Sequence record: NC_070998.1
Length of the DNA stretch: 64,000 bases
Strand: one strand, 5' to 3'
Shown here: positions 17,487 to 57,843 of the stretch, one piece after another
Numbering within the stretch: position 1 is the first letter of the stretch
Layout of the letters: the number at the start of each line of letters is the position of its first letter
Notes under the pieces: generated by a model
What the model saw: the letters and a program-made list of their open reading frames with translations, nothing else
Database searches by the model: none
What the model was told of the DNA's origin: nothing
Translations under genes and position numbers: made by a program

Positions 17487-18410
17487 TTATTTGGAGATCA
17501 ACTCACGAACCCCTTCCATTACTTGGTTGATTTTAATAATTTTGGCATCACAATAATTAATTAAACTTGTTAGGTTATTAGATACAGCAACCAATTTCTT
17601 ACATAAAGATTTAACCTTATCAGAATGAAGATTAGACTCTATATCGGAACTATTTTCTTGCCTTTTAGCTAGTTCATTATTGTGTTCAAGATCTTTAGTA
17701 ACTTCGGCCAGGGTCTCGGTAACTATCGCTCTCATCTTACTAAATAATTTTTGTAATTCAACGAGTGGGGGAGTTGCTTCAAAAATGCTAACTCGCTCGT
17801 TATTTTCGTTATAAAAGTATTTAGTTGCATGTTTTTCAGTTATTACGCCAATGCGACTATTTATCTCTTCCAATTGTGCCGCTTTAGATCTTAGATCTGA
17901 TATGGAGATCCCTGGTATTTCCTTTAACCTAGATCCTACAATCCCTGTAGTAAACATATCTTCACTGTATTTGCGTGTAAAGGTCTCGCATTTGTCAGTT
18001 TCTAACTTAATTTTTTCATTATCCATTAATCTTTCAATGCGACTCCTTTCCAATCGATAAGGATCAAAATCCTTATCATTCCGTTTACCCATAATTTCCT
18101 TGCTGACTTTCTCAGTATTTTTTACAGCGTCATCAATCACTTTAGCTTGTTTAGAGCCTTTACTACCAAAGAAGAAATCACGTATTGCTTTAATAAAGTT
18201 TTTAATCATTTCATAAACTTTAGTAGCGCCAGCTTTAACAGAAGACATGAACCCTTCTGTTCCAGATCGGTGTTTAAAATCAACACCGTTGAGTTTAAGA
18301 ACTGTTTTAGCATAAACTGAATCTGGTGATTCTAGATCACCATTAGACAGGGATTCAAAACCATTCAAAGTACTTAATACATGTTCTAAATTATCAATAT
18401 TAACATTCAT
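17487..18410 (-). CDS. Internal-head-protein paralogue of 40000-40893
   Basis: YAKTVLKLNG...GTEGF...IRDFFFGSKGSKQ aligns with YAMTVLKLRG...GCESW...IKEFFFGEGEKQ. Confidence 0.8.
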   Translation of the reverse strand: MNVNIDNLEHVLSTLNGFESLSNGDLESPDSVYAKTVLKLNGVDFKHRSGTEGFMSSVKAGATKVYEMIKNFIKAIRDFFFGSKGSKQAKVIDDAVKNTEKVSKEIMGKRNDKDFDPYRLERSRIERLMDNEKIKLETDKCETFTRKYSEDMFTTGIVGSRLKEIPGISISDLRSKAAQLEEINSRIGVITEKHATKYFYNENNERVSIFEATPPLVELQKLFSKMRAIVTETLAEVTKDLEHNNELAKRQENSSDIESNLHSDKVKSLCKKLVAVSNNLTSLINYCDAKIIKINQVMEGVRELISK

Positions 18411-18442
18411 TTACTTTATTTCCATTTAGTTAAATACAAAAC

Positions 18443-18492
18443 ATTTAAGATCCATAGATTTTTAAACCTATATTACTAGAGTGTATAAACAT
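18443..18492 (+). repeat. 50-bp promoter-containing repeat, copy 1 (49/50 identical to 57236-57285)
   Basis: ATTTAAGATCCATAGATTTTTAAACCTATATTACTAGAGTGTATAAACAT; contains TATATTAC. Confidence 0.95.
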
Positions 18493-18542
18493 AAGAGATT
18501 CTTTAATCTCTTCAACCTTTAAGTATAGAGAAGGAATGTATC

Positions 18543-18971
18543 ATGAATGAACAATATCTGACAGAGAAGCAACTGACTGATGTGTTGATCAACAACGTCG
18601 TGGAAACCCAAACACGGGTACACCAAGGAATCGATCTCAACTTCAATAGTTGGGATGAGATTGTAGAGGTCTCTAAAGAAACAGCCTGCCTTGGTAAGTA
18701 TACCAATCTGGCCGGCGCCCTGGCGGGTGTCGCTGCTTCTGTAGCTATCGAGCTCACTCGTGAAGGCGGTAGCGTCGCTACCGCTAGTGTAGCAGCTGGC
18801 GTTGGGGGTGGATTGATTTTCGCTAACCGCGAGGGCATCATGGGGTTCCAAAATGGTGCCCTTTCCGTGGTTGGTGGGCTCGGTCTGCTGGGTTTGACTC
18901 AAGTAGCAGCCCGTATCGTGGGACCCGTAGCTCCCAATAAAGTTGAAGAAGCGCAAGAGTACGTCGGTTAA
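18543..18971 (+). CDS. Gly/Ala-rich hydrophobic, probably membrane, protein, 142 aa
   Basis: AAGGAAT SD; LAGALAGVAASVA, VAAGVGGGLIF and VVGGLGLLGLT segments; GC-rich codons. Confidence 0.85.
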   Translation: MNEQYLTEKQLTDVLINNVVETQTRVHQGIDLNFNSWDEIVEVSKETACLGKYTNLAGALAGVAASVAIELTREGGSVATASVAAGVGGGLIFANREGIMGFQNGALSVVGGLGLLGLTQVAARIVGPVAPNKVEEAQEYVG

Positions 18972-19017
18972 TATGACTTGTTGGTAATGCTTGCATCGCC
19001 TTTCATGTAATATCTAA

Positions 19018-19049
19018 AGTTACCTACTCCCAACTGGGAGTAGGTAACT
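19018..19049 (+). terminator. Intrinsic terminator
   Basis: AGTTACCTACTCCC-AACT-GGGAGTAGGTAACT. Confidence 0.85.
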
Positions 19050-19073: not shown

Positions 19074-19107
19074 CTATAATTTATTAAACCGATATTATTA
19101 CACTGTA
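19074..19107 (+). promoter_or_regulatory. Putative early promoter
   Basis: CTATAATTTATTAAACCGATATTATTACACTGTA. Confidence 0.7.
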
Positions 19108-19142
19108 GTAAACAATATATGTATTTCAAAGGAGTGTAGAAA

Positions 19143-19676
19143 ATGGAAAATAAAGTTTGTAAGTCCACATTAAAAGTTGGTGGCGACTTCCCTATAGCTG
19201 AAGTCTTTTTCCTTGAGAAAGATTTACCGCATTTGGAGTCTCTTTTAGGTTCTCTTTATAATAAATTCAAACTTGATACTACCACATTAGGTTGGGTTGA
19301 GTCATTTCCTAATGAACTATTAAAGTTGTTCTGTGTCACAAAGGACTTTCAATTTGTTTATCACACTCTTAATTACAATGCAACATCACCTAGTGAAAGA
19401 TTAATACGAAAGTTAGAAAGAGAAGAAGTATATCAAGAAATACAGAATTCCCGTGGTATTCACGATCTGCTAACTAATGGTACTATATTTTTTACAGATA
19501 GATTACTTTCAAAACCTGTAAATAGTTTTAAAGTAAAGACCATTTCGGAAATGGAAAGAATAGAGAAACTTCTAAAAGAAGTGGATCTTCAACTATCCCC
19601 AGAACAAGAAGTAAAACTACTACGCAAAATTGTCAAAGAACAGCAATCTATTATAAATAACCTAAAAGGAATCTAA
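19143..19676 (+). CDS. Hypothetical early protein, LSPEQE C-terminal motif
   Basis: AAAGGAG SD; C-terminus similar to ORF 20236. Confidence 0.85.
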   Translation: MENKVCKSTLKVGGDFPIAEVFFLEKDLPHLESLLGSLYNKFKLDTTTLGWVESFPNELLKLFCVTKDFQFVYHTLNYNATSPSERLIRKLEREEVYQEIQNSRGIHDLLTNGTIFFTDRLLSKPVNSFKVKTISEMERIEKLLKEVDLQLSPEQEVKLLRKIVKEQQSIINNLKGI

Positions 19677-57073: not shown

Positions 57074-57099
57074 AGAGTTATTCGCGAATAAATCTAAAG

Positions 57100-57127
57100 C
57101 CTATACCTGGATCACTCCAGGTATAGG
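57100..57127 (+). terminator. Intrinsic terminator
   Basis: CCTATACCTGGA-TCAC-TCCAGGTATAGG then TCTATTT. Confidence 0.8.
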
Positions 57128-57235
57128 TCTATTTCGTCGTGTAATTCTTTTTAAGCAATTGTTTATGTTGATCTAACAGAATGTATGGGTTACTTGTTAC
57201 TGTTGTTTAGAAAGCGTTATATAAGCTTTGGTAAT

Positions 57236-57285
57236 ATTTAAGATCCATAGATTTTCAAACCTATATTACTAGAGTGTATAAACAT
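57236..57285 (+). repeat. 50-bp promoter-containing repeat, copy 2
   Basis: ATTTAAGATCCATAGATTTTCAAACCTATATTACTAGAGTGTATAAACAT; one mismatch to 18443-18492. Confidence 0.95.
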
Positions 57286-57341
57286 GACAAGTGTTTATAA
57301 TATTCACATATTTTCCACAAGTCTAGATAAGGAATACAATC

Positions 57342-57785
57342 ATGAACAACTCCGCTCTGAACCTGAACTCTGACATGAACCAACCAGCACCTAGTGTTTC
57401 CACTGACACCTCCAATCTCAGTCCGAACAAATGGATCGTTGCCGGCGTAGCTATCTCTGCTGCTCTGGCTGTTAACCTGACCGACCAAGTTAAAGAAGAT
57501 CGTTTCGATCTGATCAGCAATGTCGCGACCATGACCGCTGCAACCTTGGCCGGTGGTGTGTCCTACAAAGTAGCTAGTGACGTTGAAGGGGTACCTACTT
57601 CACTGTGCAGCGTCCTGGGTGGGTCTATCGGCGTCCTGTCTGCGGCAGTTGTCAACCCTACCGTAATGGCCCTGGGAAACAAGGTCAAGAACGGGTTTGG
57701 TAGCAAAGCAGAGGAACAGTTCGATATCGTGATCGTTGATAACGAGACTCTGGAAGAACACCTGGAACAGAAAGAAACCGCATAA
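57342..57785 (+). CDS. Ala/Gly/Val-rich hydrophobic, probably membrane, protein, 147 aa
   Basis: AAGGAAT SD; WIVAGVAISAALAV, TAATLAGGV and SVLGGSIGVLSAAVV segments; GC-rich codons. Confidence 0.85.
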   Translation: MNNSALNLNSDMNQPAPSVSTDTSNLSPNKWIVAGVAISAALAVNLTDQVKEDRFDLISNVATMTAATLAGGVSYKVASDVEGVPTSLCSVLGGSIGVLSAAVVNPTVMALGNKVKNGFGSKAEEQFDIVIVDNETLEEHLEQKETA

Positions 57786-57791
57786 TAAGTA

Positions 57792-57823
57792 TTCCTACCT
57801 ACCCTTTATTGGGTAGGTAGGAA
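57792..57823. terminator. Bidirectional terminator
   Basis: TTCCTACCTACCC-TTTATT-GGGTAGGTAGGAA. Confidence 0.85.
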
Positions 57824-57843
57824 CTTAACTATATATTATTTTT

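Follow-up and report, generated by a model that had tools for sequence, protein, structure and literature searches.

Nucleus-forming jumbo phages begin infection within a lipid vesicle, and to our knowledge a role has been assigned to very few of their early genes. Small, early, hydrophobic helical proteins are familiar from T4, in which Imm and Sp act in superinfection exclusion. Arbiol et al. reportedly described, in 2010, near-identical modules of early promoter and stem-loop (PeSLs) that are repeated round the genomes of T4-type phages; these modules are said to bracket single small ORFs without known function and to be recombination points for gene shuffling. Transmembrane glycine-zipper proteins are likewise said to have been described by Kim et al. 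in 2005. In two studies of the early vesicle, the membrane proteins named there are host ones only, and a recent review lists the vesicle channels of nucleus-forming phages as not yet identified (PMC12908238). Early promoters of phiKZ have a T-tract upstream of an AT-rich extended −10 and occur in 28-32 copies, mostly on one strand (PMC7598289, PMC8244752). The same two sources, which summarise Ceyssens et al. 2014, describe a highly conserved AT-rich −10-like element preceded by a T-rich tract; each genome carries some 30 such promoters, largely on a single strand, ahead of early operons that include the one with the shell gene, and the early motif is said to be bioinformatically findable in every jumbo phage encoding these polymerases (PMC7598289, PMC8244752).

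The window analysed here is a stretch of 64,000 nucleotides corresponding to positions 62001-126000 of Aeromonas phage PS1 (MN032614.2), whose isolation host is A. hydrophila ATCC 7966. Judged by its gene content, PS1 is a phiKZ-like, nucleus-forming jumbo phage: it encodes a phiKZ-type capsid protein and internal head protein, the nuclear shell protein chimallin (PS1_0048, E = 6.9e-95) and several multisubunit RNA-polymerase beta-like genes (PHROG beta-subunit families with E = 1e-168 to 1e-210, and also phrog_2943). A sequence-only reading of the window had presented one locus, cassette 1, as half of a twin system in which near-identical promoters drive lone membrane proteins. We consider it rather probable that cassette 1 is one of six stand-alone early units, that it makes an abundant, membrane-embedded, self-associating protein, PS1_0086, and that no two-gene system is involved. 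The unit opens with a phiKZ-type early promoter that has an extra 19-nt upstream element. Next come a hairpin-bearing leader of some 50-60 nt, a strong Shine-Dalgarno sequence and a codon-optimised ORF closed by an intrinsic terminator, and the combined effect would be abundant synthesis of the 142-aa product within the first minutes after infection. This protein would embed in the inner membrane of the host or a membrane that derives from it, and packing of its small-residue helices would drive self-association, altering the membrane early in infection.

Anatomy of cassette 1

The promoter block on the plus strand at 18443-18492 (37.9 bits in the weight matrix) matches 57236-57285 at 49 of 50 bases, as had been read, with a sharp drop in identity at either end and no such pair in 100 shuffles. 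It contains a 19-nt upstream element, TTTAAGATCCATAGATTTT (18444-18462), a T-tract, CAAACC and an AT-rich −10-like core, TATATTAC (18469-18476); transcription probably starts in its conserved TAGAGTG/TATAAAC stretch. The block is kept in PS2, pAEv1810 and ACP1. On the same strand, the proposed leader stem-loop with an 8-bp stem and a CTTT loop, AAGAGATT-CTTT-AATCTCTT, was found at 18493-18512 as part of the minimum-energy fold, and the leaders of orthologs and of PS1_0164 retain it. The idea that the hairpin is statistically exceptional was rejected, since the whole leader folds no better than shuffled sequence (z = 0.05). Covariation evidence is absent for the stem because the stem is invariant among orthologs, and comparison of the leader RNA with Rfam gave no meaningful match.

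A Shine-Dalgarno sequence, AAGGAAT, was read from the sequence at 18531-18537 (plus strand), 5 nt upstream of the ATG at 18543, and the start context TATAGAGAAGGAAT is common to cassette 1, cassette 2 and PS1_0164. Both motifs of the start context that had been described, AAGGAAT and TCATGAA, are present, but the spacer between them has the stated 4 nt only in cassette 2; that of cassette 1 has 3 nt. The ORF, PS1_0086 (18543-18971, plus strand; 142 aa; GC3 0.49), is followed on the same strand by an intrinsic terminator at 19018-19049 with a 14-bp GC-rich stem, a 4-nt loop and then a T-rich run. This terminator is strong (z = −5.6; 0/200 shuffles fold as well). The downstream boundary of the cassette is the next early-class promoter site at 19080-19114 (plus strand; record position 81080 in the weight-matrix scan; 29.3 bits). 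This site heads the operon PS1_0087-0090, and an ORF begins 28 nt downstream of it. With its own promoter, structured leader, strong Shine-Dalgarno sequence and intrinsic terminator, the locus would thus function as the self-contained single-gene unit that the sequence-only reading had pictured.

PS1_0086 and its family

The three Gly/Ala-rich apolar segments ascribed to the 142-aa product are present. They form small-residue-rich helices at residues 51-72, 78-99 and 105-129, between a variable polar N-terminus (1-50) and an acidic tail. Word-based protein searches returned relatives of at least 60% identity only and missed even the paralog. A profile search through 1.84 billion representative proteins found 28 distant relatives; the family to which PS1_0086 belongs is called family A here. 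The true paralog is PS1_0202, outside the window (38% identity, E = 5e-14; hhalign 98.7%), and the family A HMM run against PS1 ORFs gives E = 5.5e-36 for PS1_0086 and E = 5.6e-43 for PS1_0202. Homologs occur in OBP, N1M2, Kc263, AH04, Yubaba, SXP01, pEt-SU, Survivor, AhC3_1 and AerS_266, and the family occurs in OBP-like phages with at least nine host genera between them. A scan of viral contigs for PS1_0202 relatives found none, and no cellular homologs were found. Comparison of PS1_0086, PS1_0120 and the family alignment with Pfam, PHROGs and PDB sequences likewise gave no meaningful match, and none of the homologs of PS1_0086 has a known function.

PS1_0202 and the homologs in OBP, Kc263, Yubaba and N1M2 share one gene order, in which GroEL and small ORFs are followed by thymidine kinase and then the family gene. 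PS1_0086 is not beside thymidine kinase and is therefore read as a relocated duplicate; on these comparisons PS1_0202 is the ancestral family A copy and PS1_0086 a Ferozepurvirus-specific one. Each family A ortholog has its own early-type promoter and terminator. By the searches and gene orders described, family A is a previously undescribed family that adjoins thymidine kinase in OBP-like nucleus-forming jumbo phages, and it offers a new testable item, a conserved small hydrophobic protein family common to these phages.

The near-invariant positions Gly62, Glu70, Gly76, Ala81, Arg124 and Pro131 are all kept in PS1_0086, and conservation of Glu70 and Arg124 across the family is 97%. OBP_250, N1M2_197, pETSU_172 and related hypothetical proteins of OBP-like jumbo phages are true homologs of PS1_0086 (profile E = 1e-17 to 1e-4); they have in common with it the core of three helices, Gly62, which is invariant, and Glu70, Gly76, Arg124 and Pro131, which are nearly so. 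By contrast, PS1_0086 differs from them in lying away from thymidine kinase, in its N-terminus, in its higher GC3 and in its loop motifs, which have degenerated to T-R-E-G-G-S, F-Q-N-G and V-A-P-N-K from the family's S-P-T-G-S-K, P-Q-N and Y-F-P-G-N. AlphaFold gave a three-helix core with a pLDDT of about 90 from a 36-sequence alignment; a shallow alignment of 15 sequences gave an unusable model (pLDDT 49). In the predicted core, three uncharged helices in which Gly, Ala and Ser abound form an up-down-up bundle, with the near-invariant Glu at the end of helix 1 and Arg at the end of helix 3 on the same side. A PDB fold search with the model retrieved no known structural relative, all matches being non-significant.

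Like transmembrane glycine-zipper proteins, family A has Gly/Ala/Ser helices with i, i+4 spacing, in which the family A Gly is invariant. The glycine zipper that had been attributed to PS1_0086 is borne out only in part if taken strictly as GxxxGxxxG: helix 1 has G58-x3-G62-x3-S66, but the spacing in helix 3 is GxxGxxG, and PS1_0086 has no match to any Pfam glycine-zipper family. Most family A members have G64-x3-G68, and no contiguous GxxxGxxxG run is conserved across the family.

Judged by hydrophobicity, insertion of PS1_0086 into a membrane is plausible but marginal. The best 19-residue Kyte-Doolittle window across the family is 1.3-2.1. Hessa insertion energies of four proteins range from +2.2 to +4.05 kcal/mol, worse than every clear transmembrane protein in PS1, and soluble chimallin scores +2.9. 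Positive energies like those of soluble chimallin, together with short uncharged spans (14-18 residues), the absence of a signal peptide and the fact that the sole PDB matches, though non-significant, are soluble Ala/Gly/Ser-rich spidroin helical domains, would suit an abundant soluble or self-assembling Ala/Gly-rich helical bundle, whose place of action would be the cytoplasm or the protein shell around the phage nucleus. However, charged and strongly polar residues are all but absent from the three helices, which are also non-amphipathic (hydrophobic moment 0.2-0.56), and a monomeric bundle would therefore have an apolar surface. Moreover, the sub-threshold Pfam noise is mostly from membrane families and the weak viral fold matches are holins. 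We regard such a soluble bundle as a real but minor possibility, and retain the membrane-embedded, self-associating protein as the working interpretation. Its likeness to T4 Imm and Sp is one of functional analogy only, with no sequence or structural similarity; in addition, the phages that carry family A infect many host genera, a breadth uncommon among exclusion genes, and its membrane insertion is a predicted property. The pores, superinfection exclusion, vesicle function and shutdown of membrane-bound defences suggested by the sequence-only reading are candidate roles.

The second cassette and the promoter class

Cassette 2 has its promoter block at 57236-57285 (plus strand; 40.5 bits), with one mismatch to that of cassette 1. 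Its 5'-proximal leader hairpin at 57277-57299 (plus strand), identified from the fold, forms between the TATAAACAT end of the block and a stretch downstream of it, and differs from the cassette 1 hairpin; a 5'-terminal hairpin analogous to it is found in the PS2, ACP1 and PS1_0164 leaders. The gene, PS1_0120 (57342-57785, plus strand; 147 aa; GC3 0.55), belongs to a second family, B, and its paralog is the C-terminal module of PS1_0006. A strong stem-loop terminator at 57791-57824 (z = −5.8) lies between the convergent PS1_0120 (plus) and PS1_0121 (minus) and is probably bidirectional.

The promoter had been taken as a pair, which a whole-genome scan does not bear out. Copies of the block number 18 in the PS1 genome at up to 18 mismatches, and a weight-matrix scan picks out 33 class members, every one of them on the plus strand and 12-128 nt upstream of an ORF start, with cassettes 1 and 2 as the best-conserved pair. 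The consensus of the class is TTTTTCAaACCgATATTATTanagTGtAa, and the weight-matrix consensus over the 33 sites shows a T-rich tract followed by a conserved AT-rich −10-like element, TTTTTCAaACCgATATTATT.... Taken by itself, the 8-mer TATATTAC shows no enrichment in the window (5 occurrences against 3.1 expected); the class emerges only with the weight matrix because most members carry ATATTAT. The early promoter set of an unstudied genus is now defined, with 33 sites and a stronger subclass of six.

This subclass carries the extended upstream half, and at each of its six sites it drives one gene with raised GC3 in a monocistronic unit closed by a strong terminator. GC3 is higher (p = 0.0015) and leaders are longer (p = 0.007) for these genes than for those behind other early sites. 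That the 50-mer is linked to a class of genes, on which the sequence-only reading had staked its proposal, is borne out: products with apolar segments are found at 5/6 extended-block sites and at 6/27 other sites (Fisher p = 0.0096). The subclass also precedes PS1_0058, a 47-aa single-pass peptide, and the exception is PS1_0164, whose product is non-hydrophobic.

A true twin or two-component system, in which PS1_0086 and PS1_0120 are made in matched amounts, for example for a hetero-oligomeric membrane complex, would account for promoters that match at 49/50 positions, closer than any other pair including either of them. It would also suit the similar layout of the two proteins, in which a polar N-terminus and a V-S-x-D/E-T...L-G lead-in precede three small-residue-rich helices and an acidic tail, the place of both genes among the most codon-biased in PS1 and their retention in all Ferozepurvirus genomes. 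However, homology between the two proteins is not detectable: BLASTP gives 25% identity with a pairwise E = 0.004, hhalign 6.9% and 1.1% and the HMM E = 0.4-3, and a fold search with PS1_0086 did not retrieve PS1_0120. Their nearer paralogs lie elsewhere and differ (PS1_0202 and PS1_0006), other near-identical promoter pairs in PS1 drive unrelated genes, and the two promoters of ACP1 differ at about six positions. We thus find the twin system unlikely. On the stand-alone reading, the near-identity of the two promoters would reflect strong constraint and recombination among promoter copies.

Exchange of the regulatory region is suggested by PS1_0164, an unrelated gene that sits behind the complete cassette 1 promoter, leader and Shine-Dalgarno sequence, and whose N-terminus is found also on family A proteins of related metagenomic phages. 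From these few examples we infer that promoter-leader modules have been exchanged between genes. PS1 resembles the PeSL systems in this recurrence before an unrelated gene, but PeSLs are host sigma-70 early promoters, whereas the PS1 modules would be phiKZ-type phage-polymerase promoters in an unrelated phage lineage.

Promoter identity, timing and expression level

In its motif layout, the PS1 class matches what has been published for early (virion RNA polymerase) promoters of the phiKZ type, and the cassette 1 promoter is presumably read by the injected virion RNA polymerase. It differs from phiKZ promoters in its lineage-specific sequence, CAAACC-TATATTAC/T-...-GTG, and, in the subclass, by the extra conserved 19-nt upstream element. 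Shell-protein and non-virion polymerase subunit genes are known to be early in this group of phages. Class sites lie upstream of chimallin (PS1_0048), of the polymerase beta-like PS1_0069/0070 and of other non-structural genes, and 0/33 lie upstream of capsid, internal head or terminase genes.

A consensus scan also finds in both blocks a 9/12 match to a host sigma-70 promoter (TTAAGA, 18 nt, TATATT), with the −35-like hexamer in the upstream half that only the strong subclass has, which could make the block a host promoter or the six extended sites dual ones. By contrast, CAAACC, ATATTAT and the downstream TG that are conserved class-wide are not sigma-70 determinants, one of the two scanned regions has 9/12 matches about as often as chance would give, the motif also stands, conserved, before the orthologs of Pseudomonas, Klebsiella, Kosakonia and Serratia phages, and phiKZ-type phages transcribe without the host polymerase (PMC8244752, PMC7598289), making a sigma-70 promoter very unlikely here. 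A late lysis (holin-like) or virion component would suit a GC3 for PS1_0086 that resembles the values of capsid and internal head proteins, and its weak fold and PHROG likeness to holins. This reading is highly improbable: the holin matches are non-significant (E about 0.2-2), no lysis genes are adjacent and no endolysin or spanin gene is nearby, and its promoter is of the early class that is shared with chimallin and RNA-polymerase genes and absent at capsid, internal head and terminase genes.

We reckon it a long shot, though one worth stating, that families A and B and PS1_0058 are the first phage-encoded membrane components of the chimallivirus early programme, remodelling, permeabilising or stabilising the inner membrane or that of the early-infection (EPI) vesicle. 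If so, they would be synthesised in bulk from the injected genome and might have a part in EPI-vesicle exchange channels, and such hydrophobic proteins would be universal in nucleus-forming phages while too divergent to be linked by sequence. The family A genes, PS1_0120 and PS1_0006 are concrete candidates for early membrane events, and the promoter map would be useful for annotation and phage engineering even if the proteins prove to be ordinary exclusion or accessory proteins.

The level of expression can be gauged from codon bias. The GC-rich gene core was recovered exactly as claimed, with a G+C of 36/60 at 18721-18780 and 20/60 at 19441-19500. Ranked by GC3 among 248 PS1 genes, chimallin is 2nd, PS1_0120 3rd, the capsid protein 5th and PS1_0086 8th, a rank beside chimallin and the major capsid protein that fits very high expression. 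Together with the promoter class shared with chimallin and RNA-polymerase genes, it is consistent with the proposed very strong immediate-early expression; by analogy with phiKZ, PS1_0086 would be transcribed early. Raised GC3 does not hold family-wide, for it is not seen in the OBP and N1M2 orthologs, and extreme expression may therefore be specific to the Aeromonas-phage lineage. Recent transfer of the GC-rich core from the GC-rich host was also rejected, because genes for the capsid, internal head and shell proteins carry the same GC3 signature and no cellular homologs were found. The Gly and Ala codons of PS1_0086 account for some of its GC richness (gc1 0.66).

Promoter class and predicted expression of cassette 1

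The window shows 100% identity to PS1 (MN032614.2; 237,367 bp; record coordinates equal window coordinates + 62,000), an Aeromonas phage of the genus Ferozepurvirus. PS1 is a phiKZ-like, nucleus-forming jumbo phage that encodes a phiKZ-type major head protein, an internal head protein, several multisubunit RNA-polymerase beta-like subunits and the nuclear shell (chimallin) protein PS1_0048 (phrog_4795, E = 6.9e-95). Cassette 1 is a conserved, self-contained unit and an uncharacterised example of two known kinds, the chimallivirus early transcription unit and the small early hydrophobic phage protein; its gene PS1_0086, like PS1_0120 of cassette 2, is annotated as hypothetical. The block at window 18443-18492 agreed with 57236-57285 at 49 of 50 positions (no such pair among 100 shuffles), with identity dropping sharply at both ends, and the 142-aa ORF, the G+C counts (36/60 at 18721-18780, 20/60 at 19441-19500) and a terminator were recovered as the sequence-only reading had described them. 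The terminator has a stem of 14 bp (19018-19049) that leads into a T-rich run (z = -5.6). Folding predicted the proposed 5' hairpin at 18493-18512, but the complete leader had only the stability of shuffled sequence (z = 0.05). AAGGAAT was found 5 nt upstream of the ATG at 18543, but its spacer to TCATGAA was 3 nt and not the claimed 4 nt, which is the spacing of cassette 2.

Further copies of the 50-mer, which that reading had proposed to count, were sought by a whole-genome mismatch scan, and 18 related copies were found in PS1. An iterated weight matrix extended the class to 33 sites with the consensus TTTTTCAaACCgATATTATTanagTGtAa, all on the plus strand and each 12-128 nt from a downstream ORF start. 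The genes behind them include chimallin, polymerase subunits, a Ser/Thr phosphatase, a Clp-like protease, a transcription regulator, HNH endonucleases and many small genes without known function, whereas the genes for the capsid, the internal head protein and the terminase have none of the 33 sites in front of them. Plus-strand sites at window 1450, 10480 and 51777 precede the polymerase beta-like PS1_0069/0070, PS1_0078 and PS1_0117, and another (19080-19114) lies directly past the cassette-1 terminator, upstream of PS1_0087. The phiKZ early promoters, which are read by the virion RNA polymerase, have a T-tract ahead of a conserved AT-rich -10-like element and occur in 28-32 copies, mostly on one strand; wherever a jumbo phage encodes such polymerases, a lineage-specific version can be found computationally (PMC7598289, PMC8244752). 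Given that the PS1 class has the same architecture, that such a gene set stands behind it, and that a PS1-type motif also precedes the orthologs found in Pseudomonas, Kosakonia, Serratia and Klebsiella phages, we infer by analogy that the cassette block is an early promoter.

The GC richness of the cassette genes probably marks expression. Apart from them, GC richness in the window is confined to two head-protein genes, one for the major and one for an internal head protein, and among 248 predicted PS1 genes chimallin ranks 2nd in GC3, PS1_0120 3rd, the capsid protein 5th, PS1_0086 8th and PS1_0202 21st, although Gly and Ala codons account for part of the GC excess of PS1_0086 (gc1 0.66). A foreign origin was rejected because the capsid, internal head and chimallin genes share this GC3 signature and the searches gave no cellular homologs. 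Together with the promoter class and terminator closure, this codon bias indirectly supports the claim of a strong early single-gene unit.

Extended-block cassettes and two protein families

Six PS1 sites (record 8739, 52815, 80458, 119251, 160181 and 188823) also have the upstream half of the block (19 nt) at no more than 3 mismatches. Behind each of the six lies a single gene, followed immediately by a strong hairpin with a U-run, and in comparison with the other 27 early sites GC3 of the gene is higher (mean 0.46 versus 0.35, p = 0.0015) and the leader longer (median 50 versus 29 nt, p = 0.007). The sequence-only reading had offered a missing link between the 50-mer and this gene class as its refutation. 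Over 19 residues, the Kyte-Doolittle maximum was 1.55 or higher in 5/6 products of the subclass versus 6/27 of the others (Fisher p = 0.0096), so that this test falls in its favour; PS1_0164 is the one non-hydrophobic product of the six. One member, PS1_0058 (L004:2893-3036), is a lone gene encoding a hydrophobic, single-pass peptide of 47 aa whose C-terminus is basic, its promoter having 0 mismatches in the upstream element and its terminator reaching -41.7 kcal/mol.

The notion of a twin system is not supported, as the shared block is a promoter class and the two proteins lack detectable homology, each having another paralog. PS1_0086 and PS1_0120 share 25% identity (pairwise E = 0.004), but profile-profile comparison gave only 6.9% probability, HMM searches gave E = 0.4-3, and a fold search with the PS1_0086 model did not return PS1_0120. 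The true paralog of PS1_0086 is PS1_0202 (record 188908-189333; 38% identity across 102 residues, E = 5e-14; hhalign 98.7%), and that of PS1_0120 is a module formed by the C-terminal 140 residues of PS1_0006 (HMM E = 1e-20; 57% identity across 60 residues). PS1_0006 (L003:8825-9778; 317 aa) fuses this module to an extra 170-aa N-terminal domain for which no family match was found, and has an extended-block promoter in front and its own terminator behind. Four of the six strong cassettes therefore encode helical modules rich in small residues, which belong to two families, A (PS1_0086 and PS1_0202) and B (PS1_0120 and PS1_0006), that are unrelated or at least unlinkable.

Spread and membrane character of family A

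Word-based protein searches returned close relatives only. When 1.84 billion representative proteins were searched exhaustively with a profile, 31 matched, 28 of them distantly and all of them small (103-251 aa), with named sources including Aeromonas phage AerS_266, Edwardsiella phage pEt-SU and a 267-kb contig labelled Salmonella; tblastn added homologs in OBP, N1M2, Kc263, AH04, Yubaba, Sureiya, SXP01, Survivor and AhC3_1. Shared motifs are, in order, N-L-x-G-A-x-x-G-V-G-x-A-V-G-L-E-L-x-S-P-T-G-S-K, P-Q-N and G-R-x-x-x-x-Y-F-P-G-N. In OBP, Kc263, Yubaba and N1M2 (loci L013-L016; four genera) the order is GroEL, one or two small ORFs, thymidine kinase and the family-A gene. PS1_0202 follows PS1_0199 (GroEL) and PS1_0201 (thymidine kinase) in matching order and is therefore the ancestral copy; PS1_0086 is a duplicate that has moved elsewhere and is confined to Ferozepurvirus. 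An early-type promoter and a hairpin/U-tract terminator occur at every family-A ortholog, indicating that the single-gene layout is ancient. Outside Aeromonas phages GC3 of family-A genes is not consistently raised (Yubaba 0.46, raised; OBP 0.36 and N1M2 0.31, neither raised). The single syntenic site in phages of at least nine host genera and the invariant loop residues hint at a role in the phage's own programme rather than in host-specific exclusion or anti-defence, for which a more variable gene would be expected. The relative P0162 (205 aa, on a 2-kb ENA contig) carries the core behind an N-terminal LysR-type helix-turn-helix look-alike, as an assembly chimera or else a genuine fusion, and is the only member hinting at a cellular context.

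AlphaFold predicted helices at residues 51-72, 78-99 and 105-129 of PS1_0086 (36 sequences; mean pLDDT 77.9, about 90 for residues 50-130). The model resembled nothing in the PDB (best E = 4.4), and its significant matches in a viral structure library were family members only, holins appearing at a non-significant E of about 2. In family-averaged profiles the three helices are nearly without charged residues and of low hydrophobic moment (0.2-0.56), with charges only in loops, a pattern more in keeping with a membrane hairpin than with a soluble bundle; Glu70 and Arg124, both 97% conserved, share one end of the up-down-up bundle. However, hydrophobicity is marginal (Kyte-Doolittle maxima 1.3-2.1), and unweighted Hessa sums of +2.2 to +4.05 kcal/mol lie close to soluble chimallin (+2.9), whereas obvious PS1 transmembrane proteins all score better (-2.6 to +1.5). 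The earlier assignment as a membrane protein is thus plausible but putative, and we consider membrane embedding slightly favoured.

Membership of cassette 1 in an early-type promoter class, its strong codon bias, and the family, duplication history and fold of PS1_0086 are what the analysis establishes. In the proposed mechanism, the injected polymerase would transcribe cassette 1 in the first minutes, giving very high protein output, and PS1_0086 would insert into the inner membrane or inner-membrane-derived membrane and self-associate via small-residue packing. No counterpart is described in the literature searched; work on the early vesicle has reported membrane proteins of the host and soluble early proteins of the phage, and one review lists the vesicle's channels as still unidentified (PMC12908238).

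Promoter-leader modules and neighbouring genes

The whole regulatory region of cassette 1 (promoter, hairpin leader and SD; ~130 nt; window 18436-18548) is repeated before the unrelated PS1_0164 (L006:10160-10301, PS1 record 160160-160301). A 29-nt segment that folds as a second, 5'-terminal hairpin is present in the PS2, ACP1 and PS1_0164 leaders and absent from cassette 1 of PS1 and pAEv1810; the 5'-terminal hairpin of cassette 2 is likewise built on TATAAACAT. The N-terminus of PS1_0164, MFTESEKQAF, also starts the family-A proteins P0040 and P0048 of related metagenomic phages, and further near-identical promoter pairs in PS1 drive unrelated genes. Promoter-leader modules thus appear, from these repeats, to move between genes. 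T4-type phages carry promoter plus stem-loop cassettes that resemble them.

A second near-identical pair (L003:42313-42375 and L005:28117-28179; record 42313 and 128117) has identity well beyond the core and leaders of just 12-13 nt, before the HNH endonucleases PS1_0046 and PS1_0129. These and the similar PS1_0010 may be homing endonucleases carrying or capturing early promoters.

Two strong perfect-stem hairpins flank cassette 2. That at window 57099-57128 closes the PS1_0119 operon, and that at 57791-57824 is probably a bidirectional terminator, being called on both strands between convergent genes. Directly upstream of cassette 1 lies PS1_0085 (window 17487-18410, minus strand), whose N-terminal part matches six PHROGs of unknown function. 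A paralog stands on the minus strand directly downstream of cassette 2 in pAEv1810 and ACP1 (L011:1086-1638 and L012:1092-1638), so that both cassettes share a neighbouring gene family in these phages.
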